64,000 nucleotides of DNA from Haliotis rubra (GCF_003918875.1 NW_025767202.1:2170001-2234000), one strand, 5' to 3'; shown: positions 28,919 through 61,898, counted from the stretch's first letter. The notes: generated from the letters alone by a model not told the origin. Program-made: numbers and translations.

Positions 28919-29467
28919 TACCGCAGATGAAGTGTTTTATTACCCACTATACACAGTTCGGCTTGCACAGTTACATAACATCATGAAGCACGTCTTTCTC
29001 TGAAGGGGCAATTTTGCATCTCAGTACTGACGTCGGCTACGGCTGCTTTTATGCGAATAGCACGTTTGTTTTCACGATATATTTCTTTCTGTAACAATAA
29101 TCTGATCGCATGGCCTTTATCTATGTTAAGATTCTCCACCACCTTGTAACCTTAACTTGGAAAGTGTGAAAGGTTTCATCAGCAGAGTGAATGCTTAATA
29201 TTACTTTCTGTTACAAAACATATCCATTGCTTTAAAAGTGTAATGTATCCGTGAACTGACTGTGTGTTTATATTTTATTGGGTTGTATTTTAAACATGCA
29301 GTAAGAAGGTAGCAATGAAGACATTACTGAATTACCCACATACTAGGAGAGACCTTTTTGCAAGTAGTATTTTAATGTATAGGCTGTGTACTCTGTGAAC
29401 TGAATAGAACTCAACTCAACACAAGGGAGAATTCCTGCCTTTATGCCTTCTCATGAGTGGCCTTTGA

Positions 29468-32358
29468 AGGTGTTCCGTTAGTTGACACAGATCCAGGTGT
29501 TCCGTTAGTTGATACAGGTCCAGGTGTTCCCTTAGTTGATACAGGTCCAGGTGTTCCGTTAGTTGATACAGATCCAGGTGTTCCAGTTAGTTGATACAGA
29601 TCCAGGTGTTCCGTTAGTTGACACAGATCCAGGTGTTTCGTTAGTTGATACAGATCCAGGTGTTCCGTTAGTTGATACAGATCCAGGTGTTTCGTTAGTT
29701 GATACAGATCCAGGTGTTTCGTTAGTTGATACAGATCCAGGTGTTTCGTTAGTTGATACAGATCCAGGTGTTCCGTTAGTTGATACAGATCCAGGTGTTC
29801 CGTTAGTTGATACAGATCCAGGTGTTCCGTTAGTTGATACAGGTCCAGGTGTTCCGTTAGTTGATACAGATCCAGGTGTTCCCTTTAGTTGATACAGGTC
29901 CAGGTGTTCCGTTAGTTGATACAGATCCAGGTGTTCCAGGTAGTTGATACAGATCCAGGTGTTCCTTTAGTTGATACAGATCCAGGTGTTCCTTTAGTTG
30001 ATACAGATCCAGGTGTTCCGTTAGTTGATACAGATCCAGGTGTTCCGTTAGTTGATACAGATCCAGGTGTTCCGTTAGTTGATACAGATCCAGGTGTTCC
30101 AGATAGTTGATACAGATCCAGGTGTTCCGTTAGTTGATACAGGTCCAGGTGTTTCGTTAGTTGATACAGATCAGGTGTTCCGTTAGTTGATACAGGTCCA
30201 GGTGTTCCCTTAGTTGATACAGGTCCAGGTGTTTCGTCAGCTGATACAGATCAAGGTGTTCCAGGTAGTTGATACAGGTCCAGGTGTTCCGTTAGTTGAT
30301 ACAGATTCAGGTGTTCCGTTAGTTGATACAGATCCAGGTGTTCCCTTAGTTTATACAGGTCCAGGTGTTCCGTAAGTTGATACAGATCCAGGTGTTCCAG
30401 GTAGTTGATACAGGTCCAGGTGTTCCTTTAGTTGATACAGATCCAGGTGTTTCGTTAGTTGATACAGATCCAGGTGTTCCGTTAGTTGATACAGATCCAG
30501 GTGTTCCGTTAGTTGATACAGATCCAGGTGTTTCGTTAGTTGATACAGATCCAGGTGTTCCGTTAGTTGATACAGATCCAGGTGTTCCAGGTAGTTGACA
30601 CAGATCCAGGTGTTCCACGTAGTTGATACAGGTCCAGGTGTTCCGTTAGTTGATACAGATCCAGGTGTTCCAGGTAGTTGATACAGGTCCAGGTGTTCCC
30701 TTAGTTGATACAGGTCCAGGTGTTCCAGGTAGTTGATACAGGTCCAGGTGTTCCGTTAGTTGATACAGATCCAGGTGTTCCGTTAGTTGATACAGATCCA
30801 GGTGTTCCCTTAGTTTATACAGGTCCAGGTGTTCCGTAAGTTGATACTGATCCAGGTGTTCCAGGTAGTTGATACAGGTCCAGGTGTTCCATTAGTTGAT
30901 ACAGATCCAGGTGTTTCGTTAGTTGATACAGATCAGGTGTTCCGTTAGTTGATACAGGTCCAGGTGTTCCGTTAGTTGATACAGGTCCAGGTGTTTCGTT
31001 AGTTGATACAGATCCAGGTGTTCCGTTAGTTGATACAGATCCAGGTGTTCCAGGTAGTTGACACAGATCAGGGTGTTCCACGTAGTTGATACAGGTCCAG
31101 GTGTTCCGTTAGTTGATACAGATCCAGGTGTTCCAGGTAGTTGATACAGGTCCAGGTGTTCCCTTAGTTGATACAGGTCCAGGTGTTCCAGGTAGTTGAT
31201 ACAGGTCCAGGTGTTCCGTTAGTTGATACAGATCCAGGTGTTCCCTTAGTTGATACAGGTCCAGGTGTTCCCTTTAGTTGATACAGATCCAGGTGTTCCA
31301 GGTAGTTGATACAGGTCCAGGTGTTCCGTTAGTTGACATAGATCCAGGTGTTTCGTTAGTTGACATAGATCCAGGTGTTTCGTTAGTTGACATAGATCCA
31401 GGTGTTTCGTTAGTAGATACAGATCCAGGTGTTCCGTTAGTTGATACAGGTCCAGGTGTTCCCTAAGTTGATACAGATCCAGATGTTCCGTTAGTTGATA
31501 CAGATCCAGGTGTTCCGTTAGTTGACATAGATCCAGGTGTTTCGTTAGTTGACATAGATCCAGGTGTTTCGTAAGTTGACATAGATCCAGGTGTTTCGTT
31601 AGTTGACATAGATCCAGGTGTTTCGTTAGTTGACATAGATCCAGGTGTTCCGTTAGTTGACATAGATCCAGGTGTTTCGTTAGTTGATACAGATCCAGAT
31701 GTTCCGTTAGTTGATACAGATCCAGGTGTTCCGTTAGTTGACATAGATCCAGATGTTCCGTTAGTTGATACAGGTCCAGGTGTTCCGTTAGTTGACATAG
31801 ATCCAGGTGTTCCCTTAGTTGATACAGATCCAGGTGTTCCGTTAGTTGATACAGATCCAGGTGTTCCGTTAGTTGATACAGATCCAGGTGTTCCGTTAGT
31901 TGATACAGATCCAGGTGTTCCGTTAGTTGATACAGATCCAGGTGTTCCTTTAGTTGATACAGATCCAGGTGTTCCGTTAGTAGATACAGATCCAGGTGTT
32001 CCAAGTTAGTTGATACAGGTCCAGGTGTTTCGTTAGTTGATATAGATCCAGGTGTTCCGTTAGTTGATACAGATCCAGGTGTTCCATTTAGTTGATACAG
32101 ATCCAGGTGTTCCGTTAGTTGATACAGATCCAGGTGTTCCGTTAGTTGATACAGATCCAGGTGTTCCGTTAGTTGATACAGATCCAGGTGTTCCGTTAGT
32201 TGATACAGATCCAGGTGTTCCGTCAGTTGATACAGATCCAGGTGTTCCGTCAGTTGATACAGATCCAGGTGTTCCGTTAGTTGATACAGATCCAGGTGTT
32301 CCGTCAGTTGATACAGATCCAGGTGTTTCGTTAGTTGATACAGATCCAGGTGTTCCAG
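29468..32358. repeat. 27-bp tandem minisatellite, ~105 copies
   Basis: Unit ccaggtgttccgttagttgatacagat; followed by a short (cagaacagt)n tract at 32370-32455. Confidence 0.97.
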
Positions 32359-33484
32359 TGTTCAGCGATCGAACAGTCAGAACAATTGGTCAGAACAGTC
32401 AGAACAGTTGTTCAGAACAGTCAGAACAGTTGGTCAGAACAGTCAGAACAGTTGGTGTTTCCGATGACTTTCTTGTCTATACTTGGCATGTAGACAGGCA
32501 AGGTCATGCTTGCGGCGCCACGAATCTTCATAGTAGGCATAGAGATACACCCTTGAAGCGACTGAGAGTGGGCGGAAGTGACGACAGAGTGAGCTCCTCG
32601 TATTGGCCTCTTATACCCCCGGGAGGGTAGGGATGATGGATGTCAAGCGTCGGATGGAGTAATTATTGTAATAACACAAACATACAAGGGAGGTCACTCT
32701 GTATCTTGGTCTACACGTAAACACGCCAAAGCCGTGTGGTGTCACCATTTAAAAACAGAATAGTTGATGTTTTATGAGCGCCTCATTAAATTGTTGTCGG
32801 TTGCATTCATCATAAATACAGTTACAATCGGGCCTGTAAGTCTCTGTTCGTCACCACTCGCCCTTTCCGTAACCTCCAAGAAGACCCCCTCGTCTCGATG
32901 CCAGTTATGTCCGAAAATACGACAAACCAGTCAAAACGCGCGTAATGATTGTGGTACTTTGATGAAAATACTCCCCAGTACTTAAATCGCTTATGGCATT
33001 GTGTCCTTGTATAAAAAATCACAAAAATATATATCGTCACATTGAAAGTACAAAGAACGTAGCTAACAGAACTATGTTGCCTCGTGTAGATTTTAGTAAG
33101 GATAATGCCATGGACGGTGAGAGAATCAAATACACGCACTTGCTTTTGTTGACATAACGGCACTCATGGGTCAAATTGAATTAGTATTTGGGACGATCTT
33201 GCGGATTTGTTTTGGAGATTGTACGTGCACTTCCAACATTGTTAGGAAATGTAATTATACATCTCTATGAGTCTCAAAACAATAATATCATAGTTGTAAC
33301 TAATCAACTTTACTCTTTAACATTGGGCTTATAGTTCACATCTCTGGAGATATTTCAGTCTGACTATTTTTGGTCATTGATATATTTTTTCAGCGACTTC
33401 ATTGAAAATTCCACTGTTTCCAGTTTCTGACTAATAATTCATCACTCTTAAGTTTGATTTACTCGCTCGTCTACTGGAACTAGC

Positions 33485-34853: not shown

Positions 34854-35312
34854 TCAGGTACCTCCAGGTGTACTATTAGATATATCCCTATCGGGTGTTT
34901 GTCCAGGTGTACCATCCTCAGGTGTTTCTCCACGTGCACTAGACATGGACTTATATGTATCGGTTCCCCCTTCAGATGTGTCTCCAGCGGCATCAGATTT
35001 ACACGCATATGCAGCTGTACCCTCCTTAGGTGTGTTTACAGGTGTCCTAGTCTCCTCCACAGGTATATCTCGAGGTATGGTTGTCACTTCGTCAACAGGG
35101 ACTGCGGTCCCGTCAAAAGCTGCCTCCGCCGTGGTGCCGCTACGCTCGGACTGGGCGTGTATCCGGGGTAGCGTGGAGTAGGCCGGGGGAGGGTAGGAGG
35201 GGATGTCTACGTACGGGGGGAGGTCATTGAGGGTGAAAACTCCAGCAGGGTTATCATACGTTTCGCACCGCTCCTGGGCCTGTTGCCGTGAACGTCTTGC
35301 TAACCTACTCCT
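34854..35312 (-). CDS. CUB-LDLa receptor last exon (cytoplasmic tail)
   Basis: tttcag|RSRLARR..YDNPAG..LPPYVDIPSYPPPAYSTL..GGT*. Confidence 0.8.
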   Translation of the reverse strand, partial: RSRLARRSRQQAQERCETYDNPAGVFTLNDLPPYVDIPSYPPPAYSTLPRIHAQSERSGTTAEAAFDGTAVPVDEVTTIPRDIPVEETRTPVNTPKEGTAAYACKSDAAGDTSEGGTDTYKSMSSARGETPEDGTPGQTPDRDISNSTPGGT

Positions 35313-38300
35313 CTGAAATGACGAATGTAAACAACAATGACCACATGGAAGCGCAAGCACAGGGTTAACATCAACACATGACGGAGTGGGAACGGTTACA
35401 GCTAGAATGAAGAATCACTCACGCATTCATACACTCATGCGTGGACATACAAAACAAATACACATAGGCACACACACAACCACACACACACAAGGACGCA
35501 CGCACGCACACACACAGAGGCACACACTGTTACATACGTACATTGACACACACATGCACATACACACACATATTGTGTTTTGTGAGTGTGGGTGGGAATG
35601 TTATACATTGTTCTCCTGCAAATATCACCTTCTCCTGTACAGCTCCGTATGAAGGTGTACATGGCCTTAAGAAGGCGTAACCACTAGCCCAAGTGTTGGG
35701 TTCAACGCCTCTGTAACAGTATTTACGTAAAGTCCCAGTGTAATCCCGAAGGAAGGAACTTGCAAGTGAGGTAGGTCTGACATATTTAAACTTCATAAAT
35801 CCATGCGTATGGAGTTGACTAACCAAGAAATACATGATTCGAACACTCCAACACAGGATTCTGAAACTCGAAGGGACACAACTCAGGTGAGACATAGCGA
35901 CATACAACAATAGTTGCACGCTACACACAGATACAGGCCGTTAACCACCCAGTGCTAGGATATGAAGAGTCTAAAGTCTATACCCGTCTCCTGCGACGTT
36001 TCCGGGACGACTTGGCGCAGCAACAGCACATGGCGACGATGACAATTAGCAGAATCAGACATAGGATGATGGCAGCGGACATGTAGATAGTCGAGCTGTA
36101 GTTCACGTCCGAATTGTCGCAGTGGTCGCTGTTGTCCCCACAGTTGTTGTAGCTGTTGCAGTACATGCTGCTGTCGATACACCTGCCGTTGCTACATCTG
36201 AACTCGCCACTGTAACAACGTCCTGATCAACACAAAGGAAAGATATGATGATTCAGAATACATGTATTTTCAGTAAACATTCATTGGTTGTGATTGAGAG
36301 ATTTCCGATTGAAGGAATATTAGAACGGAGTAATGCTAGTTTGTATGTGTATCATTTAGTGATATTTTGGTAAAATGAAGAAATTTGAAAATTGATTTCC
36401 AGGATATTAACATGCAGATATACTTTCCTACACCGATGTAATGTTGGGATTTCTTTTATCACTTTCTGTTTAGGATTTTACGCATAATTGAGATGCAAAT
36501 TGTCTCTTTGGATTTATTAATTTTGTTTGTTTTGTCATTTTGAGTGAGTGAGGGGAGGGCGGCGGGCGGGCGCGTGAGGTGAGTGAGTGAGTGAGTGAGT
36601 GAGGGAGGGAGGGGAGGAGGGAGTGAGCGGTAGCGAGTCTACTAACCTGTATGGAGGGTGTTATGCGTCGGCGGGTGGGGAGGGCTGTGGTGTTTGTGGT
36701 GACCCTGGTTTACTATCCAGCCCCCCTACTATATAACGTGTAAAGGTTCATCACAGAAATATGGTGACATGATCGAAAACCGGACAATTACGCACACGTC
36801 AATGAATATATCGTATTTTAAAGGTCTCACAAGTATCAAAAGCTCTTGTCCATATCTCCGATGTGTGTAGGGGGCATATACATGCGCTTTCCGTGGGGAT
36901 GCATTTGATGGTTTTTATTAAATCGCCAAAGACTGAGTGTCTATACAAAACTAGGTCGTCAGCGCTTGACTTCACTACCTCCAGCGATCTGATTGGCTAA
37001 CACATTACACTGAATGAACGGATTATTATGTGTTTCTATAAAAAAGGAATTTCGTTTTTAAAATTATTCTTACCAAGATAAAACATCAGACCGTGACATC
37101 TTGGGTGAAAGACGTTCGAGTTCGTAAGGCCCTCGGTAATTTCCGTATACTTCGAGAAAACTAAACCTATTCCCCTGCGCGATGCGCAAACGTTTCTTCT
37201 AGACAGAACTCAGTCATGTTATGGTGGATCAGTGGCGTCTCCATCGCCCTCGTTGACAACGGACAAGCTAGCCGTTAAACGTCTTGTGTGTAACATCAAC
37301 ACAAGTCCCCGCCAGATGGGGGATATTTGTGGCCTCACATTTGCTTGTGTTAGTCAAGTTGAATCTAAGTCGATGTAACACGTGTTCTGATTGGATAGAA
37401 AGAAGGGAGATAATTCGTGTTGCGATCTTTTGCCGCTAGGTGATTTTACGAGAACCCGGAAATATGGCCGTATTAGAACAGAGGTTACGTAGGAAGATAT
37501 GACAAGTAACCTCTGTGGAAGAAGAATGTGGATTACTATTTATCTAATTTTCAAAAGAGCCTGCTTGCGGTACGATTGAATCGCTACTCACCATGACTAT
37601 GCCTATCGTATGTGCATGTCAGCAATCTTCCATTGATATTGACTGGATAACCCTCCCTCCCACCCGCACGCACACACGTACGCACGCGCGCACGCACTCA
37701 CTCACTTACCGACCCACCCACACACTCACTCACTCACTCGCGCCATAGTAAGTGCAGTTGAATTCCTGCAGAATTGTGTCTTCACTTACCTTGAAGGTGA
37801 TTGGAAACACGGGCAAAACAATATCAAAGTCAATTGTTTTATGTTTGACAGATGTACTCACGTGAAAAAAAGGTCTTTTTGTCCGTAATTTATAACCACA
37901 AAATCTTCACACTGTTCCATCATTTTATTTGTGTGAATCTGTAGATATATGAAACGTAGCATGATGCGATGTCCTGGCCTGGCTTGGAGAGTCAGGTCAC
38001 AGTCCATGTGCGGTTGGTAGTACAGTTTTTCCGTCAGTGTTAACACAAACGGTTCCTCCACGTCAAACCTCCTTCCACATCTCTCATCCATGGCAACTGA
38101 GGAAACATGTAGAGCACAATGTGTCAAAGGGAGAAACAACAACACACATCACAAGCAAATTACCATGTTACATGTTTGGTATTTTTTATGTTCTGATATG
38201 ATTATCCAGGTAAAGTTCCATTTGGATTAATTATTTTCAAGCGCCTGTCGTGCAGTGTGCCAAATAGTTTCCCAAATTTTGTTAGCCAGTCGAGCCAGCT

Positions 38301-42918: not shown

Positions 42919-43524
42919 CTTGTGTATGTCAGGTTCCGGGACGGACGACCAGCCATGCATGATGTAAGGGTGTGCGTGATGCGTGAGGCCCTTTATGTCA
43001 CGTTGACTTCACATTGACAACATGGTATGGCGGGCATTGGAGCAGCGAATGTATGGGTAGCATGTTGTTGTTATTGTTGTTCAAAATTACCATCTAGTCA
43101 GACCGGCTTTGTAAAGCCGAGCATATTCATGCTTTAAGAATACGCCACGAAACGGGTCTCCGAATGTGTGCTTTCAACAGGGCGAAGCCTTCCCTACACC
43201 ACTCGTTGACGAGATGTATATTACAGGAACATATGTGACAAGAACAGAATGTTATTCTGGTTGTTGAAATTGTTGAACATGATTTTACGGAACTACTGTA
43301 TTAGATTGGTAGATACGTACCTCGTTTTATACATATTCACGTTATAGGTCAACCTTTGATTGATTCTTTGTACCCGACCTGTTTAACAAGTACCAAACAG
43401 GGAAATACCTTCATTGTATCCCAGTTTCCCTGTTTGCTTGTGTGAGAGGATACCTCGTAAGATGCTTGTGTGAGATGTCCGTGTATGATGCTCGTATATA
43501 ATGGTTGTGAGTTATCCCTCGTGA

Positions 43525-45420
43525 AGATGGTTGTGTGTGTTGTTTGTTAGTGATGGTTGTGTGTGTTGTTTGTTAGTGATGATTGTGAGTGATGGTTGTG
43601 TGTTGTTTGTTAGTGATGATTGCGAGTGATGGTTGTGTGTTGTTTGTTAGTGATGGTTGTGTGTGTTGTTTGTGAGTGATGATTGTGTGTGTTGTTTGTT
43701 GTGAGTGATGATTGTGTGTTGTTTGTTAGTGATGGTTGTGTGTGTTGTTTGTGAGTGATGATTGTGTGTGTTGTTTGTTAGTGATGGTTGTGTGTTGTTT
43801 GTTAGTGATGGTTGTGTGTGTTGTTTGTTAGTGATGGTTGTGTGTGTCTCTTTGTTAGTGATGGTTGTGTGTGTCTTTGTTAGTGATGGTTGTGTGTGTC
43901 TTTGTTAGTGATGGTTGTGTGTGTTGTTTGTTAGTGATGGTTATATGTGTTGTTTGTTAGTGATGGTTGTGTGTGTCTTTGTGAGTGATGGTTGTGTGTG
44001 TTGTTTGTTAGTGATAGTTGTGTGTGTCTTTGTGGAGTGATGGTTGTGTGTGTTGTTTGTTAGTGATGGTTGTGTGTGTCTTTTGTTAGTGATGGTTGTT
44101 TGTGTTGTTTGTTAGTGATGGTTGTGTGTGTTGTTTGTTAGTGATGGTTGTGTGTGTCTCTTTGTTAGTGATGGTTGTGTGTGTCTTTGTTAGTGATGGT
44201 TGTGTGTGTCTCTTTGTTAGTGATGGTTATGTGTGTTGTTTGTTAGTGATGGTTGTGTGTCTCTTTGTGAGTGATGGTTGTGTGTGTTGTTTGTTAGTGA
44301 TGGTTATGTGTTGTTTGTTAGTGATGGCTGTGTGTGTCTTTGTGTGAGTGATGGTTGTGTGTGTTGTTTGTTAGTGATGGTTGTGTGTGTCTTTGTTAGT
44401 GATGGTTGTGTGTGTCTTTGTTAGTGATGGTTGTGTGTGTGTCTCTTGTTAGTGATGGTTGTGTGTGTCTTTGTTAGTGATGGTTGTGTGTGTTGTTTGT
44501 TAGTGATGGTTGTGTGTGTCTCTTTGTGAGTGATGGTTGTGTGTTGTTTGTTAGTGATGGTTGTGTGTTGTTTGTTAGTGATGGTTGTGTGTGTTGTTTG
44601 TGTGTGTGTCTTGTTAGTGATGGTTGTGTGTGTCTTGTTAGTGATGGTTGTGTGTCTCTTTGTTAGTGATGGTTGTGTGTGTGTCTTTGTTAGTGATGGT
44701 TGCGTGTGTGTGGTTTGTGAGTGATGGTTGTGTGTGTTGTTTGTTAGTGATGGTTGTGTGTGTTGTTTGTTAGTGATGGTTGTGTGTGCTGTTTGTTAGT
44801 GATGGTTGTGTGTGTTGTTTGTTAGTGATGGTTGTGTGTGTCTCTTTGTTAGTGATGGTTGTGTGTGTTGTTTTGTGAGTGATGATTGTGTGTGTTGTTT
44901 GTTAGTGATGGTTGTGTGTGTCTTTGTTAGTGATGGTTGTGTGTGTGTTGTTCTGAGTGATGATTGATTGTGTGTGTTGTTTTGTTAGTGACGATTGTGT
45001 GTGTTGTTTGTTAGTGATGGTTGTGTGTGTTGTTTGTGAGTGATGATTGTTAGTGATGGTTGTGTGTGTCTTTGTTAGTGATGGTTGTGGTTTTGTCTCT
45101 TTGTTAGTGATGGTTGTGTGTGTCTTTGTTAGTGATGGCTGTGAGTGATGGTTGTGTGTGTTGTTTGTTAATGATGGTTGTGTGTGATGATTTTGACCGA
45201 TGGTTGTGCGCGATGGTTGCGATTGATGGTTGTGATGGTCATGAATGATGGTTGTGAATGATGGTCGTAAATGTGGTTGTGAGCGATGGTGGTAAGTTTT
45301 GGTTGGTTGTAAATGATGGGTTGTAAAATGATGTTGGTTGTGATGGTGGTAGTGATGGTTGCGATGGTTGTCAGTGATCCTTGTGAGTGATGGTTGTTTG
45401 TGGTGGTTGTGGTGGTCCTC
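43525..45420. repeat. GT-rich ~27-29-bp minisatellite
   Basis: Unit gttagtgatggttgtgtgtgttgttt and variants. Confidence 0.95.
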
Positions 45421-46487
45421 GTAACCCTCCATTCTTAAAAATAATGTGCCTCGGCCCCTCTGGGACCTAGGCTCCATTATTATTCAGAAATGGAGAGTTA
45501 CTCGGAGATTACCCTCTACATAACTGTTAGTGTTGTAATCAGCTGTTGAAATATAATGCATCCCATACCATGCGTTTACAAAGTCATAATCTTGTGCACG
45601 ACTATACGATGTCTGTGTTCTACGTCCGTGTATAGTCTACCATGGAAACCCTGAAACTAATATACCCAATGTAGCCTATAACAGTCAAGACTATAGGTGG
45701 CAAGTATAGAATACCACAGTTTCAGGCTGAAATGAAGAACGTCTCTGGATACCTTGTATTATAATTTTCATGAAAATAAATTCGAAATTGTTTCTTTTTC
45801 TTTACAATGTGTTCATTTGAGAGGCTAGATGTTAGTCTAGTCGCTGCTGTATTGTAGTATATCCACAGACGTCATACCAGGCAAAGGCGTAGATAAACAC
45901 TACTACTGGGAGACCCCGAATCCCGGGTGTACTCTGTGTAATCACACATCCTTGCTAATTCATCCGTGAGTCTATTCAGTGCACGGTCCCGCCCAAACAC
46001 TTAAAGCATATCGTATTAAGATGCATTTACATAAACATTTTCACAGTAAGCAACAATTTTATGAGACCAGTTTTACGAGTTTGCAAGATGGAGATGAATT
46101 TGAATGTGAATTCAGGGACGTTTTGTACAATAAATGCGTTTCAGATATTTGAATAAAAATCCCACATGCAATTCATCTTAACACCGTCATACCCTTCTAC
46201 TTACATATTAATGCACAAAGCATCACTATAACTGATATGTTTCGAGCAATATCACCAGCTAAGATAAAAGCTGAACCATCGAGACTTGGCATAATCCGTG
46301 TTCAGGGTTTCGGGAAGATAGTACCCCCATCTTTAGCATACTTACCAAAACGATCGGAAGTCCGTATGATTTGGAGGGTGACTGCCAATGGCTGAACGAC
46401 ATCATAATGAAGTTTTTACTCAAACCATGAGCCATGTGTGGGACCTTTCTCTTCATGTTGAAATATAATTGTATCAGACTGTTTCAA

Positions 46488-51812: not shown

Positions 51813-53723
51813 GAAGTAATAGTCGATGGTCTATAATTCCCAAGTCTCATCGATTGCACAGGATTGTAAGGTGGATCTGTTCGAGTGACATGGTGGAGTA
51901 CGACTATTTGCTTTCTCCTGGCTGGCCAATTGTGGCTTTGTCCTCACACACATCAAGTCATGATCTTATTTCATAAACAAAGCAACTCTTTTTTACCACC
52001 GGGGCCATTGAACAAAAATTGGTAAATATAAAGTTGATTTTTGAAAGTGCAAAAGTTGTTACAGTATTTCTGCATTGTTGAAGAACTTGTGGCGTGGAAC
52101 GTTAAATTGACATGCGAATTTGACACGAACCAGAAACCAACATCCCAAATCAAGGATTGTTCACATCTGATAATTCTGCAAGGTCGGGATGTTTCACACA
52201 GTTATTTCTGTCCTTTCTGAATGGCGAAACAATGACAATGACAATGACAGTGAGAAACGAGTCCACATTATCTGACGAAACAAATTATATCGGACACAAA
52301 AGGAAAAGTAGCATTGTAAAATGTAATTGCTGTTATTAACACCAGGTTTTCTCGAAGATGGAGCATCCGCTACTCTCACACCATGCATGTTTGTGTTTTC
52401 TTTTTTGATTGTCTGCTTCAATGCATGAGGGTGTGCCAGGTAATTATTGTAATTACTCCTGTACACGTGTGTTAGTTAATCGCAAACTGTTTCCACGTGC
52501 ATCGTTCCGTAATGAACTGAGTAACCCGAGACGACTGGGGATATTAGTCACAGTGGTTCGAATCGTTGTTTCGACAATAATTTTTAAAAATAAAAATCTA
52601 GACTTTTGCAACTGTATATTGTTTTTATATGCTATGAGTAACATACATTTCAAATTTGAACGAAATCGGCGAAGAAAATTTAGAAAATTCTCCCGCTACA
52701 CTTATATAAAATACACCATCCACATTTACTCTTTATATCAAGTACCAGTATCTTTTAGAAATCTGGGATTTCTTTATTCAGTTCATGAATTTTATTTTGT
52801 AAGACTAAGCTTTGTATTTAGGTGTCCTCGCTTGGTCTTAATTGTCTTAGAGACATATTTTGGCTGTACATAGACCGCTAAGGAGCATTTCTCCCAAATT
52901 TCCCTAGCCTAGATGGTTTACTCCCAAAAGTTAGACGTCCCAAAAGTCAGACATCCCAATTGTCAGACAAATCAATCAGGCGTGACTGTGATAACAACCT
53001 AGTCTTACCCACTGATATAATGAACCTGTCCCATGCACTAGCGAGATGGTTTTCACATTTGTACAGAAATACTTTGATCAGAATACTAATGTTGACTGGC
53101 CCTATGGAGTGTCGAGTTAACCAACTCCCAGGATTGGTCACTCCCGACTTAATGTGTCGATTGTTACTTAATGTTACCTTGATGTCAGGAGCGCAGATAC
53201 GCGACACTCTACAAGGCACTATTCATTAACAAACAAAAATACTTAAGGTAAATAAAACTCAAAACAACATATGGCATTAAATGTGTTTATGTCTACAGGG
53301 GTTTTCTTTACTCAGTGCATCAGGGCGCAGGGTTGGCAGAAGCTTGGACACCTGTAAATGAAATAATCGATGATACATCATTGTGTTCACATGCAGGATA
53401 GGAAACAAGATGTTTATATTTAATGGAGAACATCTAGATAATTAGCATGTGAACTTTGAAGGTAATACACCGATTTGTCAAATTTGTTGACACTCGTCGT
53501 ACGGAGCCGACTCATTTGTTTATGACAACACTCATCTCTCACGTCTGACCACATCACAATGAGAATTCGTCGTGTGTTTAGTAGAAATAACCACTTCTGC
53601 CTATGGGAGATATGTTAAACAGATTAGACGACGTGACGAACAGTATTGCCACGTACAGGTGATATCTCCGTGTTGCTAGGATACCACCTGCTAGTTTACC
53701 TTCACAAGACCCGGGTATGGTGG

Positions 53724-53899
53724 TTAGCAACCGACTTCGAAACAAGACTGTGTGTCGGTGTCGGTGTCGCTGCCGTCACAGGTACCATTAGCGCTGTTAC
53801 TGGTGCCGCAGACCCGCAGTCGCTGTCTCCGTATGACGCCCACACCACAGGTTACCGAGCAGCAGCCGTCATCCTGCCATTCATGCCAGTCTCCCCATT
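53724..53899 (-). CDS. TSP1 exon (third)
   Basis: ttccag|EWGDWHEWQDDGCCSVTCGVGVIRRQRLRVC..C..SCFEVGC*. Confidence 0.85.
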
Positions 53900-56800
53900 C
53901 TGGAAGTGTCGAAGTCAACTTATAAACACTGAGGAAATGTTTGCATTGAAATTTGCATTATTTTACTATAGGATATATAAATCTGCTTATTAGTAATGTA
54001 CCACTACCTTCATATCTTAGCACACACACATACACACACGCTCGCACATACACACACACACACAAAGAAGATCGTTCAGGCCGTTTTAATAGTCCGCTTT
54101 CAATGCCATTAACGAGCCCTCTAGCTACTTCTTAAACGAAACCCAAGAAACCCATTAATTTGGGAGTAAAAGTTCGGAATGTCAGTTCGCATCTATTGCT
54201 AAGCTGTATGTTTCTAGCCTCTCTGTAGTAATTTAGATAATCCTCTTCTTGTCTTATCTTATAAGAATACATACCCGGACAAATAGCACGACTACCCTGT
54301 AATTGACCACGTGCCCAGACAAATGTAATGTCTGTCCTGTAATACACTACACGACTTGAAGAATTCCACAAAGACAATGAATAAACCACATACCGATATC
54401 GTTGTCATGGCTACCCTGCCATAGTATAAGTACATGGGCAAATGGCTGTAATTGATTCTATGCCTTGATAAGTATCATGGCTACCCTGTAATAGGTAAGA
54501 CATTTGGAAAGCTGTGATTGTTTCATTTTCACTTTATACCTGTCTTGTCTATCTATCCTATAATAGACTAGAACAAGGGTCATTGCCACCCTATAATGTC
54601 CTACACACCTGTACAAATGTCATATCTACCCTGATTTGCTCTACACCTGGACCGCTGTCATGACTACCTATAATAGTCTACGTACCTGGACAAATTCCAA
54701 CATTGCATTCCATTGACTCTGTTTGAACTTGCTCTTCATTGCACGTAGGGTCATTACTTGGACATGGCCTTGACCTTTCACGGGAGACGCAGCCAAGGCC
54801 ACATGTAGTGGAGCAAGGTCCGAGAGCTGACCAGCTGGACCACTCTACAAATAATAACCCCAATACGTGATTTAGTGGAAATCAATACAAACCGATTAAA
54901 CGTTCCAAGTTCACGAAAACAATTAGTCAGGAACTATAAACATATTCATGACGGTATTGCCAGGACTTTAAGGTCGTGATTCACAATTGGCACGCGCATG
55001 TTAATGAACGCGTTGTTTACCTATCAGGTGCTCTTTAATAACATATTCTTGAGCGTAAATAAAGCTAACGCTGGACCAGGGTTTGCTGAACATCGCCAAC
55101 GCGATGTGTGAATGCTGCTAACAGGAATGGCGCCGAAAGAAGTTGCAAGACATTTTAATATTAATCGATATTATCTCTGTGGAGATATTCTGTTATCATT
55201 TGTCACTAGCCCGTCGTCCACGTGTGGCGCGTCGGCCAACATATTCGGTTGCTGCATCTACTGAATCATCAACAGCTTGAACGATTCTTGGATTGACACC
55301 AAATCGTGGCAGAGCCGTTTCCAACTGGCTGAAAGCATCCACAATTTTGTTCCAAGTCACTGTCAGGCATGCCTAACTAGACAGCATCTGAGATTCAGGT
55401 GAGTCCAAGTTCCATCTACATTCGTCCACGAGAACATTTGCGTTATTCAACCTTTTGGGTTAGAAGTGTAATAGTGGTAGGATTTGAGGCTATAAAACAC
55501 TGCAGGTATCCTCCACATGCCAAGCATGAGATGGTACTACCTCCACGACTGGATCAGAACTAGCTCACCCAGCTCAGTTGAACCAATCCTTGGCTGACAC
55601 TTGAAAACCCATCTAGAAGACAACCATCTGGTGTCTTCAACGCATGGCCACCACCTCCCTTGTATCAACGCAAATGGCTGTTTTTCATGACAGTGATAGA
55701 GTTAACCGAGTTGTTACAACACACTACTTGAAGAGCCTGGTGCTCTGATTCCTGTTAGCAGGTATGTTTTTGGTTAATGAATTTGTAAGGATTATAAAAT
55801 AAGCAGACGAATGACCGAAATAGTATGTTGTTACTTTCACGATTTTCACCCCCTTTAAAGAGACACACATCCTTTTCCTTCTGCTGTAACCTTTCATCAG
55901 ACATGGTTGGTACATAGCATGTATACAAGTGAGAGTTAAAGTGGCAGTCACATCGGCAATATTTTAGAAATGTTCTGATTCGTTGTCGTGATTGTTAAAC
56001 AATAATAGTAACGCAAAACGTTTTCTGAGAAAATGTTTGAGAATATTTAGAAACCTATTACTCATTACTCATCAACACAAAAACGTAACGTCCAAAAGAT
56101 AATCTGCATCTAGAACCAGACCTCTAACCCAGGAACTGTCTCGACGCGAGGTAGCTCTGCACGCTTCTGCATATATAGCCAAGCTCTACTGTACATTTCA
56201 CATTTGATCTACACACGTTTTATAAAGAACAACAGATGCTTAGTTCGATTAATTAAAAGCACTGAAGGTCTCACATGGTGGCTTCAACAAGAAACAATAC
56301 AGGAACCGGTGAATGATCTACGTCCTATTTATGCACACACGGCATAATTTGACACAACGTTAGTGATAAGGCTTAACAAATATTCTTAACAGAATCCTAA
56401 ATTACCAGGCTGAGGATTAGTCCATGGTGTCCAGCTTTGGGGTGGTCTTGACCACGTAGTCCATGTTGGAGGCTGTGTCCACGTGGTCCATGTTGGCGGT
56501 GTTGACCACGTGGTCCATGTTGGAGGTGTTGACCACGTGGTCCATGTTGGCGGTGTTGACCACGTGGTCCATGTTGGAGGTGTTGACCACGTGGTCCATG
56601 TTGGAGGTGTTGACCACGTGGTCCATGTTGGAGGTGTTGACCACGTGGTCCATGTTGGCGGTGTTGACCACGTGGTCCATGTTGGCGGTGTTGACCACGT
56701 GGTCCATGTTGGAGGTGTTGACCACGTGGTCCATGTTGGCGGTGTTGACCACGTGGTCCATGTTGGAGGTGTTGACCACGTGGTCCATGTTAGTGGCGTT

Positions 56801-59800
56801 GTGGATGTTGTTGTGGTTGTTGGTGTTGTTGTGTGTGTTGGTGTTGGTGTTGGTGTTGTTGTTGGAGGCGTTGTTGTGGTTGTTGTTGGCATCTCTGGGG
56901 TTGTGGATGTTGTTGGAGGTGTCGTTCTTGTTGTCGTGAGTGTTGTTGTGGTTGTTGTTGGCATATCTGTCGTTGTGGTTGTTGGTTGTATCGTTGTGGT
57001 TGTGGTTGTCGTGGGTGCGGTTGTTGTTGTTGTTGGAGGTGTGGTTGTTGTTGGAGGTGTTGTGGTTGTTGTTGGTATTTCTGTTGTGGTTGTCGGGGGT
57101 GTTGTTGTTGTTGTTGGAGGTGTTGTTGTTGTCGGGGTTGTTGTTGTTGTTGTTGGGGGTGCGGTTGTGGTTGTTGGTATCTCTGTTGTTGTGGTTGTCG
57201 GGGGTGCGGTTGTGGTGGTTGTTGTTGGAGGTGTGTGGTTGTAGGGGTGTTGTTGTGGTTGTTGTTGGCATCTCTGTGGTTGTTGTTGGGGGTGTTGTGG
57301 TTGTCGGGGGTGTTGTTGTGGTTGTTGTTGGTATCTCTGTGGTTGTTGTTGGAGGTGTTGTTGTAGTTGTCGGTATCTCTGTTGTTGTGGTTGTTGTTGG
57401 TATCTCTGTGGTTGTTGTTGGTTGTTGGAGGTGTTGTGGTTGTCGGGGGTGTTGTTGTTGTTGTTGGTATCTCTGTTGTTGTTGTTGTCGGCGTTGCGGT
57501 GGTTGTCGGTTGTTGTTGTTGTTGGAGGTTGGCATCTCTGTGGTGGTTGTTGGAGGTGTTGTGGTGGTTGTCGGGGTGTTGTTGTGGTTGTTGGTATCTG
57601 GTGGTTGTTGTTGGTTGTTGTTGGCATCGGTGGTTGTTGTTGGAGGTTGTTGTTGGTGCGGTCTCTGTGGTTGTTGTTGGAGGCGTTGTTGTGGTTGTCG
57701 GGGGTGTTGTTGTGGTTGTTGCTGGTATCTCTGTCGTTGTGGACGTTGGGGGTGTCGTTGTGGTTGTGGATGTTGTGGGTGTTGTTGTAGTAGTTGTTGG
57801 AGGTGTTGTGGTTGATGTGGTTGCCGTTGTGGTTGTACACATAGGTGAGATACAGTTCACTGTTCTGTTTTCACTGGCGACGAATGGCAAACACATCCGG
57901 ATATCATCCTGATGTTCCGTGTCACACATCCTTGTCCTTGTGTCCACCCTCTCCTGCATCCCACACGCCCCTGTACAGTCCCCCTGCACCCACTCTGTCC
58001 ACTCCGTGATTCCTACACACAACATACACACATTAAGACAAAGTGAGGGATTTTAACGCCTCTTGAAACAGTATATTCAGCCACTGCGTGTCGGCCTGGC
58101 GGGGGAGTAATGCCCAAAACATTGCTCAAGGACGTTTACCTACTTTGATGAAAACCAACGAACACGGTGCTAAACCCTGGGGTATCCTAAGTACCATTAC
58201 ACAGTATAATGTGGTCAGACCCGCTGACTTGGTTGACACATCACGACCCAGCTGACCGATGCTCGTGGATTGTCTAGTCCAGACTCCGGCATTTACAGAC
58301 CACCGTCATATAGCTATGATATTGCTGAGTGTGTCTTTCAACAACAAACAAACAACGCTGTAATGCGGCTCCTCAGAAAACCCGTCTTATGGGGGAGGTG
58401 GAGTAGCCAAGTGGTTAAACCGTTCGATAACCACGCCGAAGACCCGGGTTCGATTCCCCACATGGGTACAATGTGTGAAGCCCATTTCCGGTGTCTCCCG
58501 CCGTGATGTTGCTGGAATATTGCTAAAAGCGGTGTAAAACTAAAACTCACTCACTCTACGCTTATGAAGAAAATGTATGTATCCATGAAATGAGTGTTAC
58601 AATAATGATAATACATATATCACTGACATCAGTGGTGAATGCAGCTTCACTTACTTCCATCATCGTCGATAATGGTAAACGTGAAGGTGTCTTCAGGCCC
58701 AGGGCTTCCGGTACTGGTAGTCAAGATCCTGATGTGAAAAGATTCCGTGCCCTCGAAAATCTGACAGACAAATCAACAATATTACAATTGATTCGTCAAC
58801 CTTCATTGCACTGTTTTATTATGCAAATAGCAATTTCAGGATTGTCATCAGTAGATACAAACCCAGATATTGTGTAAATTGAACAGTGAAAAATGTTTGC
58901 AACCATCTCTTTTCAGCAATAGAATGAACCAGAATGGAGTTGTACAGGCTGTGACAACTTTGTTCTTACCATACAGTTCCTAACGACTATCTCTTAAACT
59001 CAATGGTTGCCCAGTAAAATCTCCTTTACCTCCTGTTCATAGTAACACCCTATGAACCAAGCAACACTACATTTACACACAGTGCTTCGTCATTTACGAT
59101 CAGCTCTGGTGTGCTGGGACAAAGTCTAACCCGGAGTCTGAGAGAGGGGGAATTCATAGCAGATAGTTCTGTTCATTAGTGATGTGGTTTACACTCTGGA
59201 CAGGGAATACATTATATTACAACGGTTGCGTCTAAAGCCTACATTCAGTAGTACGTCAGGTTGTGATGTGGTTTACACTCTGGACAGGGAATACATTATA
59301 TTACAACGGTTTTGTCTAAAGTCTACATTCAGAAGTACGTCAGGTTGTGATGTGGTTTACACTCTGGACAGGGAATACATTATATTACAACGGTTTTGTC
59401 TAAAGTCTACATTCAGAAGTACGTCAGGTTGTGATGTGGTTTACACTCTGGACAGGGAATACATTATATTACAACGGTTGCGTCTAAAGTCTACATTCAG
59501 AAGTACGTCAGGTTGTGATGTGGTTTACACTCTGGACAGGGAATACATTATATTACAGCGGTTGCGTCTAAAGTCTACATTCAGAAGTACGTCAAGTTGT
59601 GATGTGGTTTACACTCTGGACAGGGAATACATTATATTACAACGGTTTTGTCTAAAGTCTACATTCAGAAGTACGTCAGGTTGTGATGTGGTTTACACTC
59701 TGGACAGGGAATACATTATATTACAACGGTTTTGTCTAAAGTCTACATTCAGAAGTACGTCAGGTTGTGATGTGGTTTACACTCTGGACAGGGAATACAT

Positions 59801-61898
59801 TATATTACAACGGTTTTGTCTAAAGTCTACATTCAGAAGTACGTCAGGTTGTGATGTGGTTTACACTCTGGACAGGGAATACATTATATTACAACGGTTT
59901 TGTCTAAAGTCTACATTCAGAAGTACGTCAAGTTGTGATGTGGTTTACACCCTGGACAGGGAATACATTATATTACAACGGTTTTGTCTAAAGCCTACAT
60001 CCAGTAGTACGTCAGGTTGTGATGTGGTTTACACTGTGGACAGGGAATACATTATATTACAACGGTTTTGTCTAATGCCTACATTCAGAAGTACGTCAAG
60101 TTGTGATGTGGTTTACACTCTGGACAGGGAATACATTATATTACAACGGTTTTGTCTAAAGTCTACATTCAGTAGTAGGTCAGGTTGTGATGTGGTAGAG
60201 GTCTTGTTTGATTAGTGGCGCATTTGAATCTAAACAAGGTGATCACAGATACAGTTACTTCTCTGTCTTTAGAGGTTCGGGACAATCTGATAAACTACAA
60301 GAAGCAAATTACTTAGATTCGGGGACATTCCCGTCATGCCTGACTGCTTCCTATTGCATAGCGATCAGAATTATTGCAACGGTGGTCAGTCAGAAAATTA
60401 GGCCACTAAGGTTAATTTAACCTTCAGTAATCCCAAGTGAGTTATTTAATTTTGATTCAATATCCTTCTTGAAGAAGAAATAGGAAATATTTATCATTCC
60501 GTCATTTTTGCAAAAATTGTTATGAAATGTGGTATTTGTTCAGACTCATGTTGGATTAATGAATGGCCCGGGTTTGTGCAAAATGTTTTAAATTACAATA
60601 TTAATATAGCATTAACCATGCTCTCAAATTCTCTCAAAGATTTACAATGATGATATATCACTGAGCTGAGACGTGGCACTATTAGAAACGTCTTCCACTG
60701 CTGCTATAGCTTTACTTACTTCCGGTACTAATTACCGACAACTAGTTACATGACTGCTGTTCACAATGACCTCACCGAGTCGTCACTGATAGGTACGCTT
60801 ATGGTGATGGCTGAGATGAAAGGCGGGAAGACTGCCGAGATGTTGCCTCCGGTCGCCACCGATGTCTCGACAATGTTGCTACTAGCAGGCACGGTTGTTT
60901 CGATTGTGTAATAAATCGTCGCAGGCTGAGCTAGTGAAGGTGCGAATCGTGAGACTGTGACTTCTAAGGGTCCGTCACCTTCGCTGATGAAGTTGGGGCC
61001 AGACATTATGTAAAATGCCGTGGTAGGAAAAAACAGCGCTGCAAATATTTCAATGGTGAATACAGTGTAAGAGATGTGTTGAGATTCTACACACGCTCTT
61101 AATTTTTTATGCAAAGACACGTTTAGATTAGGGTACGGGTGTGTTGGGGTGGGGTGGGGTGGGGGAACGCGGTGTGTGTGTGTGGAGTGATTTAGTCATT
61201 TAGGGATCTCCTACTCGTTGGGTGTTCAAACGACGACAGGGTACGTATAGGTATGCTTTTCCAAATGACGGTCTTTGAAATGTTCTAATTTTTCAGTACT
61301 TCGTCACTGAATGGATACACAATCCCTGAAACAGTGTTCCTAGTGTTCCTAACGATAATAAGTTAATCTAGTTTATGCATTATAATCTTTGTTTCAGAAA
61401 CCTTGACATGGGTCCCGGGCAAAGCACTGAAGATGCGACTTTATAAATGAGTGAATCTGGGATTAGGAAAGGCCTTTCAGCCTTTTGCACACACAGGTTG
61501 TGGCTCTTCCCCAACTAAAATTCAACTTTAAATTATGAAAAGTAAGATTCATGAAGAATTATAATTCTTATCATATATCCTGGATTCAGATTGTGCCTGA
61601 GCGTCGCATTGTGTCCCATAGTCACAATCACTGGATTGTCTGGTTCAGACTAGATTTGTTTACAGACAACATCATACAGCTGTAATACCGCTGAAACCAA
61701 TATCTGCTCATGATATAGTGCAATCGGCTCTGTTTCTGGAAGAGACTTCTTATGAATGTGGAAATGGTTTTGTTGCTTCTATCTAATCTTGTACAATATA
61801 CAGAGGTAAATACACCCACCTGTGTGGACGTCCAGAGTCTGATTCAGCAGCAGCAACAGCAACAGCAGGTTCTTCCATCGTTGAAACACACCCGCCAT
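53724..61898 (-). CDS. Secreted Calx-beta / TSP1 / Thr-rich mucin / WxxW-repeat / TSP1 / TSP1 protein (frameshifts in mucin exon)
   Basis: Exons 61898-61820, 61038-60776, 58760-58655, 58012-56406, 54844-54686, 53899-53724, GT-AG with compatible phases; possible extra exon starting at 53351. Confidence 0.78.
54686..54844 (-). CDS. TSP1 exon (second)
   Basis: ttgtag|EWSSWSALGPCSTTCGLGCVSRERSRPC..C..CNVGICP|gtacgt; 159 nt, phase 1-1. Confidence 0.88.
55000..55900 (+). mobile_element. Highly degenerate Tc1-like relic (intronic)
   Basis: MAPKEVARHFN-like HTH start and scattered similarity to the 7.9-kb and 20.5-kb relics. Confidence 0.4.
56406..58012 (-). CDS. TSP1-like + Thr/Pro-rich mucin + (PPTWTTWST)13 exon
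   Basis: gtgtag|ITEWTEWVQGDCTGACG..RTRMC..C, poly-Thr, 13 WTTW units, WTNPQP|gtaatt; the Thr-rich frame switches several times at ~57240-57650. Confidence 0.75.
56445..56796 (-). repeat. 27-bp coding repeat x13 (PPTWTTWST)
   Basis: Plus-strand unit gttgaccacgtggtccatgttgg(a/c)ggt. Confidence 0.95.
58214..58355 (+). mobile_element. SINE-like family B, deleted copy
   Basis: gtcagac.cgctgacttggttgacac..tccagactc..catatagct..atattgctgagtg + (acaa)n. Confidence 0.75.
58390..58557 (+). mobile_element. SINE family A, full length
   Basis: tagccaagtgg A box, ggttcgattcc B box, (actc)n tail. Confidence 0.92.
58655..58760 (-). CDS. Calx-beta domain, second exon
   Basis: tgtcag|IFEGTESFHIRIL..TFTIIDDDG|gtaagt. 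Confidence 0.85.
59179..60197. repeat. 84-bp tandem minisatellite, 12 copies (intronic)
   Basis: Unit gtgatgtggtttacactctggacagggaatacattatattacaacggttttgtctaaagtctacattcagaagtacgtcaggtt. Confidence 0.97.
60776..61038 (-). CDS. Calx-beta domain, first exon
   Basis: ttgcag|ALFF..ISEGDGPLEVTVSR..VFPP..TISVPISDDS|gtgagg. Confidence 0.82.
61820..61898 (-). CDS. Signal-peptide exon
   Basis: MAGVFQRWKNLLLLLLLLNQTLDVHT|gtgggt, phase 1. Confidence 0.75.

Follow-up and report, generated by a model that had tools for sequence, protein, structure and literature searches.

C-mannosylated proteins with thrombospondin repeats (TSRs), such as thrombospondin, properdin, UNC-5, F-spondin/mindin and the apicomplexan TRAP, hold their WxxW(xxW) motifs within a folded, disulfide-bonded TSR with an arginine ladder. 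In the gel-forming mucins, a WxxW stands between O-glycosylated mucin tracts, within the Cys-rich, folded CysD domain (Mucin2_WxxW, PF13330) of ~100 amino acids, which has one such motif, reportedly discussed as a C-mannosylation site. A third group, the Calx-beta adhesion proteins (e.g., the sponge aggregation factor, FRAS1/FREM and ADGRV1), use arrays of the Calx-beta domain. In this work we describe a gene of the abalone Haliotis rubra that has features of all three. It lies on the minus strand of a stretch of 64,000 nucleotides (GCF_003918875.1, NW_025767202.1, 2170001-2234000; this whole stretch is here called the window, and coordinates are window positions) and is very probably a single-copy gene of six exons, encoding a secreted modular glycoprotein of ~796 amino acids when read in the frame of its Trp codons, the public RefSeq model having been misled by insertions and deletions (indels) in the assembly.

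Like the TSR proteins, the abalone product shows the signs of secretion and has TSP1 repeats starting with WxxW, and the borders of its exons 4 to 6 are in phase 1, as is usual for shuffled extracellular modules; unlike theirs, its 14 sequons are free-standing, outside the TSR, in Thr/Pro surroundings. With CysD it shares the setting of WxxW among mucin tracts, but its array is free of Cys, is built of a 9-amino-acid unit and has no Pfam match. As in the Calx-beta adhesion proteins there is a full-length Calx-beta domain with the DDxxFExxE motif and terminal DDD of the Ca2+-binding domains of CALX; however, there is one copy only, its acidic cluster is incomplete, and the Wreath, CSPG and GPCR parts of those proteins are missing. 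The public entry for this locus, a RefSeq protein of 389 amino acids (P0151), bears the name 'mucin-2-like [Haliotis rubra]', which is compositional only: VWD, C8, TIL, CysD and cystine-knot domains were found by Pfam search neither in any exon nor in P0151, so the marks of a gel-forming, MUC2-like mucin are missing, and a Pro/Thr/Ser (PTS) composition is all that is shared.

Results

The gene model is based on Logan contigs aligned to 53650-59150. Runs X1 (Illumina) and X2 are of the same species as the window, and run X3 is RNA of a sister species, 'organism B', with an exon divergence from the window of ~3.8% (32 differences in 852 nt). X3 contigs cover the array but not the introns (54938-56225 and 58802-59150; depth zero), from which it follows both that this run is RNA and that the array is exonic. 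In one X3 contig (record 15), 56508-56406 is spliced to 54844-54686 and this to 53899-53698; in another (record 16), 58761-58654 is followed directly by 58011-57732, with 362 further nt upstream, whose unplaced sequence we infer to be exon 2 plus ~100 nt of exon 1. A single G is ambiguous at each border of these spliced contigs, and the borders were set by the canonical AG and GT sites. The exon phases agree across all borders.

The array occupies 56421-56799, at the end of exon 4 (56406-58012; 1607 nt as assembled, phase 1 to 1), an exon that begins with a TSP1-like repeat, continues as a Thr/Pro (PTS) tract and ends in the array. Both borders of this exon are backed by X3 RNA contigs, with a GT donor at 56406. 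Tandem Repeats Finder (TRF) gives a 27-bp unit in 12.9 copies at 56444-56791 with 95% matches, in a tract that is A/C-rich on the coding strand. In the Trp frame this becomes 13 units of the type TPPTWTTWS followed by a degenerate RPPQSWTPW, in the order TPLTWTTWS, ten times TPPTWTTWS, TPPTWTTWT, QPPTWTTWS and RPPQSWTPW; that is, 14 WxxW motifs (13 WTTW and a terminal WTPW) and 28 Trp in 131 amino acids. The ten inner units are the same protein, and their sole variation is at one synonymous third codon position (CCT/CCG). The array is free of Lys, and its single Arg is in the last unit. Since the units are 95% alike at the DNA level, the array arose recently, by expansion of a 27-bp unit where the mucin tract comes to its C-terminal end. 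An earlier note, made by reading this DNA alone, had counted 13 units plus WTPW, with 14 WxxW, and the table of units returns exactly that count.

Several observations place the array in a coding frame, the synonymous variation of its inner units among them. Only the Trp frame stays open across the array as far as the donor at 56406, and it continues in phase into the TSP1 repeat of exon 5. Between the window and organism B, 11 of the 15 coding substitutions listed are synonymous in the frame read by the earlier note, which had taken the Trp frame as coding and is borne out here. At the end of the array (56508-56406), the sister species differs at two of 103 nt, and the one change listed is synonymous. 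The same note had named, as what would overturn its reading, transcripts that skip this exon or use another frame; the sister-species RNA contigs cover the array and splice 56406 to 54844.

P0151, found through the first TSP1 repeat (to which it is 100% identical), is a different reading of the same gene. Translated by script, the segments 61898-61820, 61038-60776, 58760-58655, 58012-57498, 54844-54686 and 53899 onward give P0151 exactly. From the signal peptide through the Calx-beta domain and TSP1 repeat 1 to about residue 120 of the stalk, the two proteins are the same; P0151 then follows the TSP1 frame into a shifted reading rich in Asn, Gln and His, leaves exon 4 at 57498 by a GC-AG pseudo-intron (54845-57497) that skips the array, and takes exons 5 and 6 in a wrong frame, which closes 15 codons into exon 6. 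It thus differs by lacking ~1.1 kb of the stalk and the whole array, and by the loss of both C-terminal TSP1 repeats. One could take the public annotation at its word, so that 57497-54845 is a true GC-AG intron with the array inside it, and the product is a 389-residue protein of Calx-beta, TSP1 and a short mucin tract; the exon set does reproduce P0151, and the joints of the contigs are listed only in part, which leaves room for a 57498|54844 junction. We regard this as hardly credible. In its frame the two TSP1 exons lose their domains, and across exons 5 and 6 only one of nine interspecies substitutions is synonymous in the RefSeq frame, as against seven of nine in the TSP1 frame (for exon 5, all three changes listed). 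Moreover, the RNA contigs end exon 4 at 56406 and not at 57498, the array is covered, and the depth in the intron 56405-54845 is zero. The RefSeq model seems instead to skip the array and misread the TSP1 exons because of assembly indels in the stalk. With this model, public protein databases lack the array as well as the C-terminal pair of TSP1 repeats. The earlier note had not recognised the architecture as a named gene, and in substance this was right, the only public entry being this misframed automatic 'mucin-2-like' model without the array.

Both borders of exon 4 are in phase 1, so its length should divide by three, yet 1607 nt is 3n+2. The TSP1 frame is Thr-rich only to ~57650 and, when read straight through, meets a stop at 56793, just ahead of the array; the Trp frame is continuous over 57235-56406; and in between (57647-57235) nine frame corrections are needed, a Viterbi frame path shifting the Thr-rich reading nine times within the error-prone part of the PTS tract at 57235-57650. 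A hidden canonical intron that restores the frame was considered and rejected: by eye there is no GT on the coding strand in 57650-57250, and for that reason a canonical internal intron cannot explain the shifts. The published H. rubra assembly was made from ~30x Nanopore plus Illumina data and polished with Racon and Pilon (PMC6774278); being a Nanopore-derived hybrid, it belongs to a kind of assembly in which indels tend to remain. Over 53650-56508, a same-species X1 Illumina contig has no substitution relative to the assembly and six gap letters, at homopolymers, including indels in non-repetitive intron sequence at 55331, 55772 and 56029 (+AA, -1 and +AAA), which look like residual Nanopore consensus error. 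Within exon 4, X1 has a T inserted behind 57233 and a G behind 57243, and both X1 and X2 have deletions of one nt at 57648 and of 15 nt at 57651 (16 nt together). Both of these indel sets fall on frame-switch points, and their sign modulo three is the one that restores the frame. When the two insertions are applied by script, the broken '...TTTTTTPLQPHTSNNNHH...' becomes the uninterrupted PTS reading '...EMPTTTTTTPPTTTTPPTTTTTTAPPTTTTTEIP...', and the corrected junction, with the bases at 57233 and 57243, reads ...EMPTTTTTTPPTTTTPPTTTTTTAPP.... The nine switches are therefore most likely ~nine Nanopore indel errors of 1-2 nt each, in a low-complexity stretch of ~410 nt of the stalk.

The gene so read still has points that weigh against it. 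The intact middle of exon 4 is not seen as one sequence, short-read contigs breaking in the repeats; among the contig rows listed, matching indels are found for two of the nine switches; the frame-restoring X1 contig has a depth of 97, against ~160 in the flanks, and could be one of two alleles; and the RNA evidence is from organism B rather than from H. rubra. Some of this would suit genuine breaks, i.e., that the reference individual, or the species, has a decaying or null allele in which the stop at 56793 leaves the array untranslated in H. rubra. The exon as assembled is after all 3n+2 with nine switches, a sequence of A and C only has no stops in any frame and so tolerates frameshifts at the DNA level, the periods that TRF finds in this stretch (127, 92 and 29 nt) are none of them multiples of three, and an alternative X1 contig at about half the flanking depth would fit heterozygosity. 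Such decay nevertheless strikes us as improbable, given that all the breaks lie within 410 nt of a Nanopore-derived assembly, that the nearby differences from same-species Illumina sequence are of the indel kind only, that two observed single-base insertions yield a perfect PTS reading, that the flanks of exon 4, the array and the downstream TSP1 exons are under purifying selection between the two species, and that spliced transcripts of the gene are present in the sister species. The reading with assembly errors is the one we keep in what follows; the gene structure, the reading frames, the expression in the sister species and the annotation error are taken as results on these grounds.

The remaining exons supply the modules on either side of the stalk, and with the domain searches (run on single exons and on the public spliced protein P0151) they agree with the secreted order proposed in the earlier note: signal peptide, Calx-beta, TSP1, PTS stalk, array and two TSP1 repeats. 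The coding part of exon 1 (61820-61898, 79 nt) starts with the ATG at 61898 and ends in phase 1 at a CAG|GTGGGT donor. Its N-terminus (MAGVFQRWKN, eight Leu, NQTLDV) matches the start of P0151 exactly, and the eight-Leu core bears out the proposed signal peptide; this signal-peptide-like segment is also the Kyte-Doolittle maximum of the whole protein (1.67). Exon 2 (60776-61038, 263 nt, phase 1 to 0, acceptor tttgcag|CG, donor TCG|gtgagg), which is within P0151 and is a single copy in the genome by own-genome search, codes for the Calx-beta domain over its N-terminal two thirds, and exon 3 (58655-58760, 106 nt, phase 0 to 1) for the C-terminal third (IFEGTESFHIRIL...FTFTIIDDDG). Searched singly against Pfam, the exons at 61038-60776 and 58760-58655 give no Calx-beta match; joined, as residues 41-148 of P0151, they match PF03160 over profile positions 14-119 of 119 with 27.0 bits (E 4.8e-6), which is exactly the gathering score and thus borderline. 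The single Calx-beta domain of the earlier note is in this way recovered on the joined exons only. Residues 36-149 also align with structures of the Ca2+-binding domain of fly CALX in the PDB (E 0.001), and the acidic cluster is kept at ~7 of 10 positions (DDSIFEGTE versus DDDVFEEDE, and IIDDD versus ILDDD).

TSP1-like repeat 1 (57849-58010) is weaker than the earlier note had it: it shows WTEW, six Cys and R-x-R spacing (RTRTRMC), but in Pfam it falls below the threshold, with 15.1 bits for TSP_1 against a cut-off of 21.6 and E 0.0029 for TSP1_spondin, and with CTGACG it lacks the O-fucose sequon. The other two repeats are canonical. TSP1 repeat 2 is in exon 5 (54686-54844, 159 nt, phase 1 to 1; WSSWS...CSTTCGLG), with 28.3 bits (E 2e-6) for TSP_1 (PF00090), and repeat 3 is in exon 6 (coding part 53724-53899, 176 nt including the stop, starting in phase 1; WGDWHEW...CSVTCGVG...FEVGC), with 23.8 bits, both above the same cut-off; each has the CxxTCxxG O-fucose sequon. 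The two C-terminal TSP1 repeats of the earlier note are thus confirmed, but their positions (54844-54686 and 53899-53727) fall beyond the span that it gave for the gene (56406-61898). Its long Thr/Pro stalk stands as a T/P/S-rich tract (T+P+S of 0.8-0.97 per 30-codon block over ~1 kb, about 350 amino acids of mucin type) but is not, in the assembly, a single open reading frame (ORF): it is split over three frames, its nine switches having gone unnoticed.

The stop codon at 53726-53724 lies within exon 6, and the final Cys of TSP1 repeat 3 is also the last residue of the protein. A Kyte-Doolittle scan finds no hydrophobic segment past the signal peptide; together with the stop, this confirms that the protein is without a transmembrane (TM) segment, as the earlier note had it. 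The CUB, LDLa and TM exons at 38148-34857 were considered as a membrane anchor and rejected: with the ORF stopping at 53726 in exon 6 and no hydrophobic stretch of its own, these exons at 38-35 kb must belong to another gene. That other gene, on the minus strand at 34857-38148, has a CUB fragment (37861-38148), an LDL-receptor class A domain with a TM segment and an RRRRR stop-transfer sequence (35981-36226), and a tail ORF rich in Pro, Thr and Glu (34857-35414).

Relatives of the array were looked for widely. In the genome of the species itself (1,378,282,171 bases in 2855 contigs) there is no second copy, the other matches being low-complexity sequence rich in Thr, Pro and Ser with 22-51% identity. 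A word-indexed protein search with the 131 residues gave no match, and against Pfam at E <= 10 the array hits no family, Mucin2_WxxW (PF13330) included. HMMER against 1.84 billion representatives returned 216 matches at E <= 0.001, and none of the 150 listed, when scanned, has W[ST][ST]W arrays; the ~15 that were read are all unrelated repeats with a nine-residue period (e.g., bacterial collagen-like TGPTGxTGx, or PPSETTDQT). Look-alikes in the ESM Atlas are at the level of chance (0.80). A literature search found neither the motif strings of the array nor anything specific on combinations of abalone, Calx-beta, thrombospondin, mucin and shell matrix. For the N-terminal half, a search for orthologues among proteins of 214-735 amino acids returned P0151 itself only; one of ~800 would escape it, so this is no evidence of absence. 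The want of an array relative in the database searches may likewise be due in part to the true protein being missing from public databases.

TSP1 repeat 1, in turn, has weak paralogues in the genome, one of them in tandem ~10 kb upstream on the same (minus) strand, past the window's end (C2312:2241224-2243680) and 44% identical to this repeat. This paralogue has a TSP1-like plus Thr-rich mucin exon (PWSAW...TTTTLEPTTTT...), followed by a canonical TSP1 exon (WSEWSCW...CSVTCGTG), and in its two ORFs inspected neither a WxxW array nor a Calx-beta exon was seen. Because the array is unique in the genome and the paralogue is without it, the array is a recent, local addition to a small group of TSP1-mucin genes.

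The window holds other repeats, some of them within the introns of this gene. Between exons 3 and 4, at 58066-58617, there is an extremely abundant interspersed repeat, with a contig depth of up to 5e7 in DNA runs, whose loose-end consensus starts GGTAGCCTAGTGGTTAAAGCG and resembles the head of a tRNA-derived short interspersed nuclear element (SINE). Between exons 2 and 3, at 59179-60196, an 84-bp minisatellite in 12.1 copies (96% matches) creates a spurious plus-strand ORF of 343 amino acids. Farther off, the A/C-rich minisatellite at 43350-45480 (GC skew 0.56) reads on the minus strand ...HTTITNKQHTQPSLT... and is mucin-like by composition; as a second mucin exon this tract of 43.4-45.5 kb was rejected, having stops every 55-190 codons in all frames. 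At 29400-32400, ~3 kb of repeat with a 27-bp period reads GTPGSVSTN or EHLDLYQLT in open minus-strand frames.

Discussion

The question raised by the array is what 14 WxxW sequons might do outside a TSR. In WxxW it is the first Trp that DPY19 enzymes modify, and this in unfolded chains only, an octapeptide being sufficient for CeDPY19, which favours small side chains at +1 and allows any residue at +2 (PMC10154233). The abalone array combines the WxxW sequon with a signal-like N-terminus and the lack of a confident fold, i.e., the properties of a DPY19 substrate, and the genome has two multi-exon DPY19 loci that match PF10034 above the cut-off, over profile positions 5-653. As far as its sequence goes, C-mannosylation of the array is therefore plausible. 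In such a scheme the protein would enter the endoplasmic reticulum, DPY19 C-mannosyltransferase would have access to the first Trp in every one of the 14 unfolded WTTW/WTPW sequons, and the Thr/Pro stalk would be O-glycosylated in the Golgi. Outside the cell, the product would form an extended stalk that has adhesive modules (Calx-beta and TSP1) at either end and, beside the C-terminal pair of TSP1 repeats, a glyco-aromatic segment, which would fit a matrix or mucus adhesion protein. The earlier note had proposed a densely C-mannosylated segment of this kind, as in a shell-matrix, mucus or adhesive protein.

It is tempting to go further and see in the array a natural poly-sequon, with up to 14 C-mannosyl-Trp, one every nine residues, forming a new glyco-aromatic module in a Cys-free, non-TSR context. 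Next to the TSP1 pair of a matrix or mucus protein of the abalone, such a module could be an adhesive strip that faces carbohydrate or mineral. We put this forward as a speculation that is, on balance, unlikely to hold in full. Counting against the scheme of C-mannosylation as a whole are the Thr at +1, which is larger than the best-documented Ala or Ser, and the AlphaFold prediction of the array alone, which has a predicted local distance difference test score (pLDDT) of 52.8 and no confident fold. It is quite possible, if still somewhat doubtful, that the array is translated and yet is a mere compositional variant of a mucin repeat, its Trp largely unmodified, acting as a neutral spacer of variable copy number without a specific function. 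A recent expansion, with its nearly identical units, would look like this, as would the failure to find an array homologue elsewhere, the tandem paralogue ~10 kb upstream that makes do with TSP1, mucin and TSP1, and again the array's lack of a confident fold. A neutral spacer does not, however, sit easily with 14 consensus sequons in an unfolded secretory segment of an organism with two DPY19 loci, nor with the end of the array being kept in the sister species (2 changes in 103 nt, the one listed synonymous).

Whichever of the two is correct, the case has a lesson for the annotation of this genome. Residual Nanopore indels in one low-complexity exon were enough to lead the pipeline to invent a GC-AG intron, to drop an array of 14 sequons and to mistranslate two TSP1 repeats, and the models of other mucin-type or low-complexity exons of the assembly have probably gone wrong likewise.

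In conclusion, the gene encodes a lineage-specific variant among secreted proteins of the TSP1/mucin type, set apart by a Trp-bearing repeat unit without precedent, and tandem WxxW sequons that stand free of TSRs and cytokine-receptor motifs appear to be undescribed. If the Trp of these units are unmodified, the array is one more lineage-specific mucin repeat. If they are modified, it would be the densest natural C-mannosylation substrate known, and a model both for how DPY19 acts on consecutive sequons and for what C-mannosyl-Trp does outside the Trp-Arg ladder.

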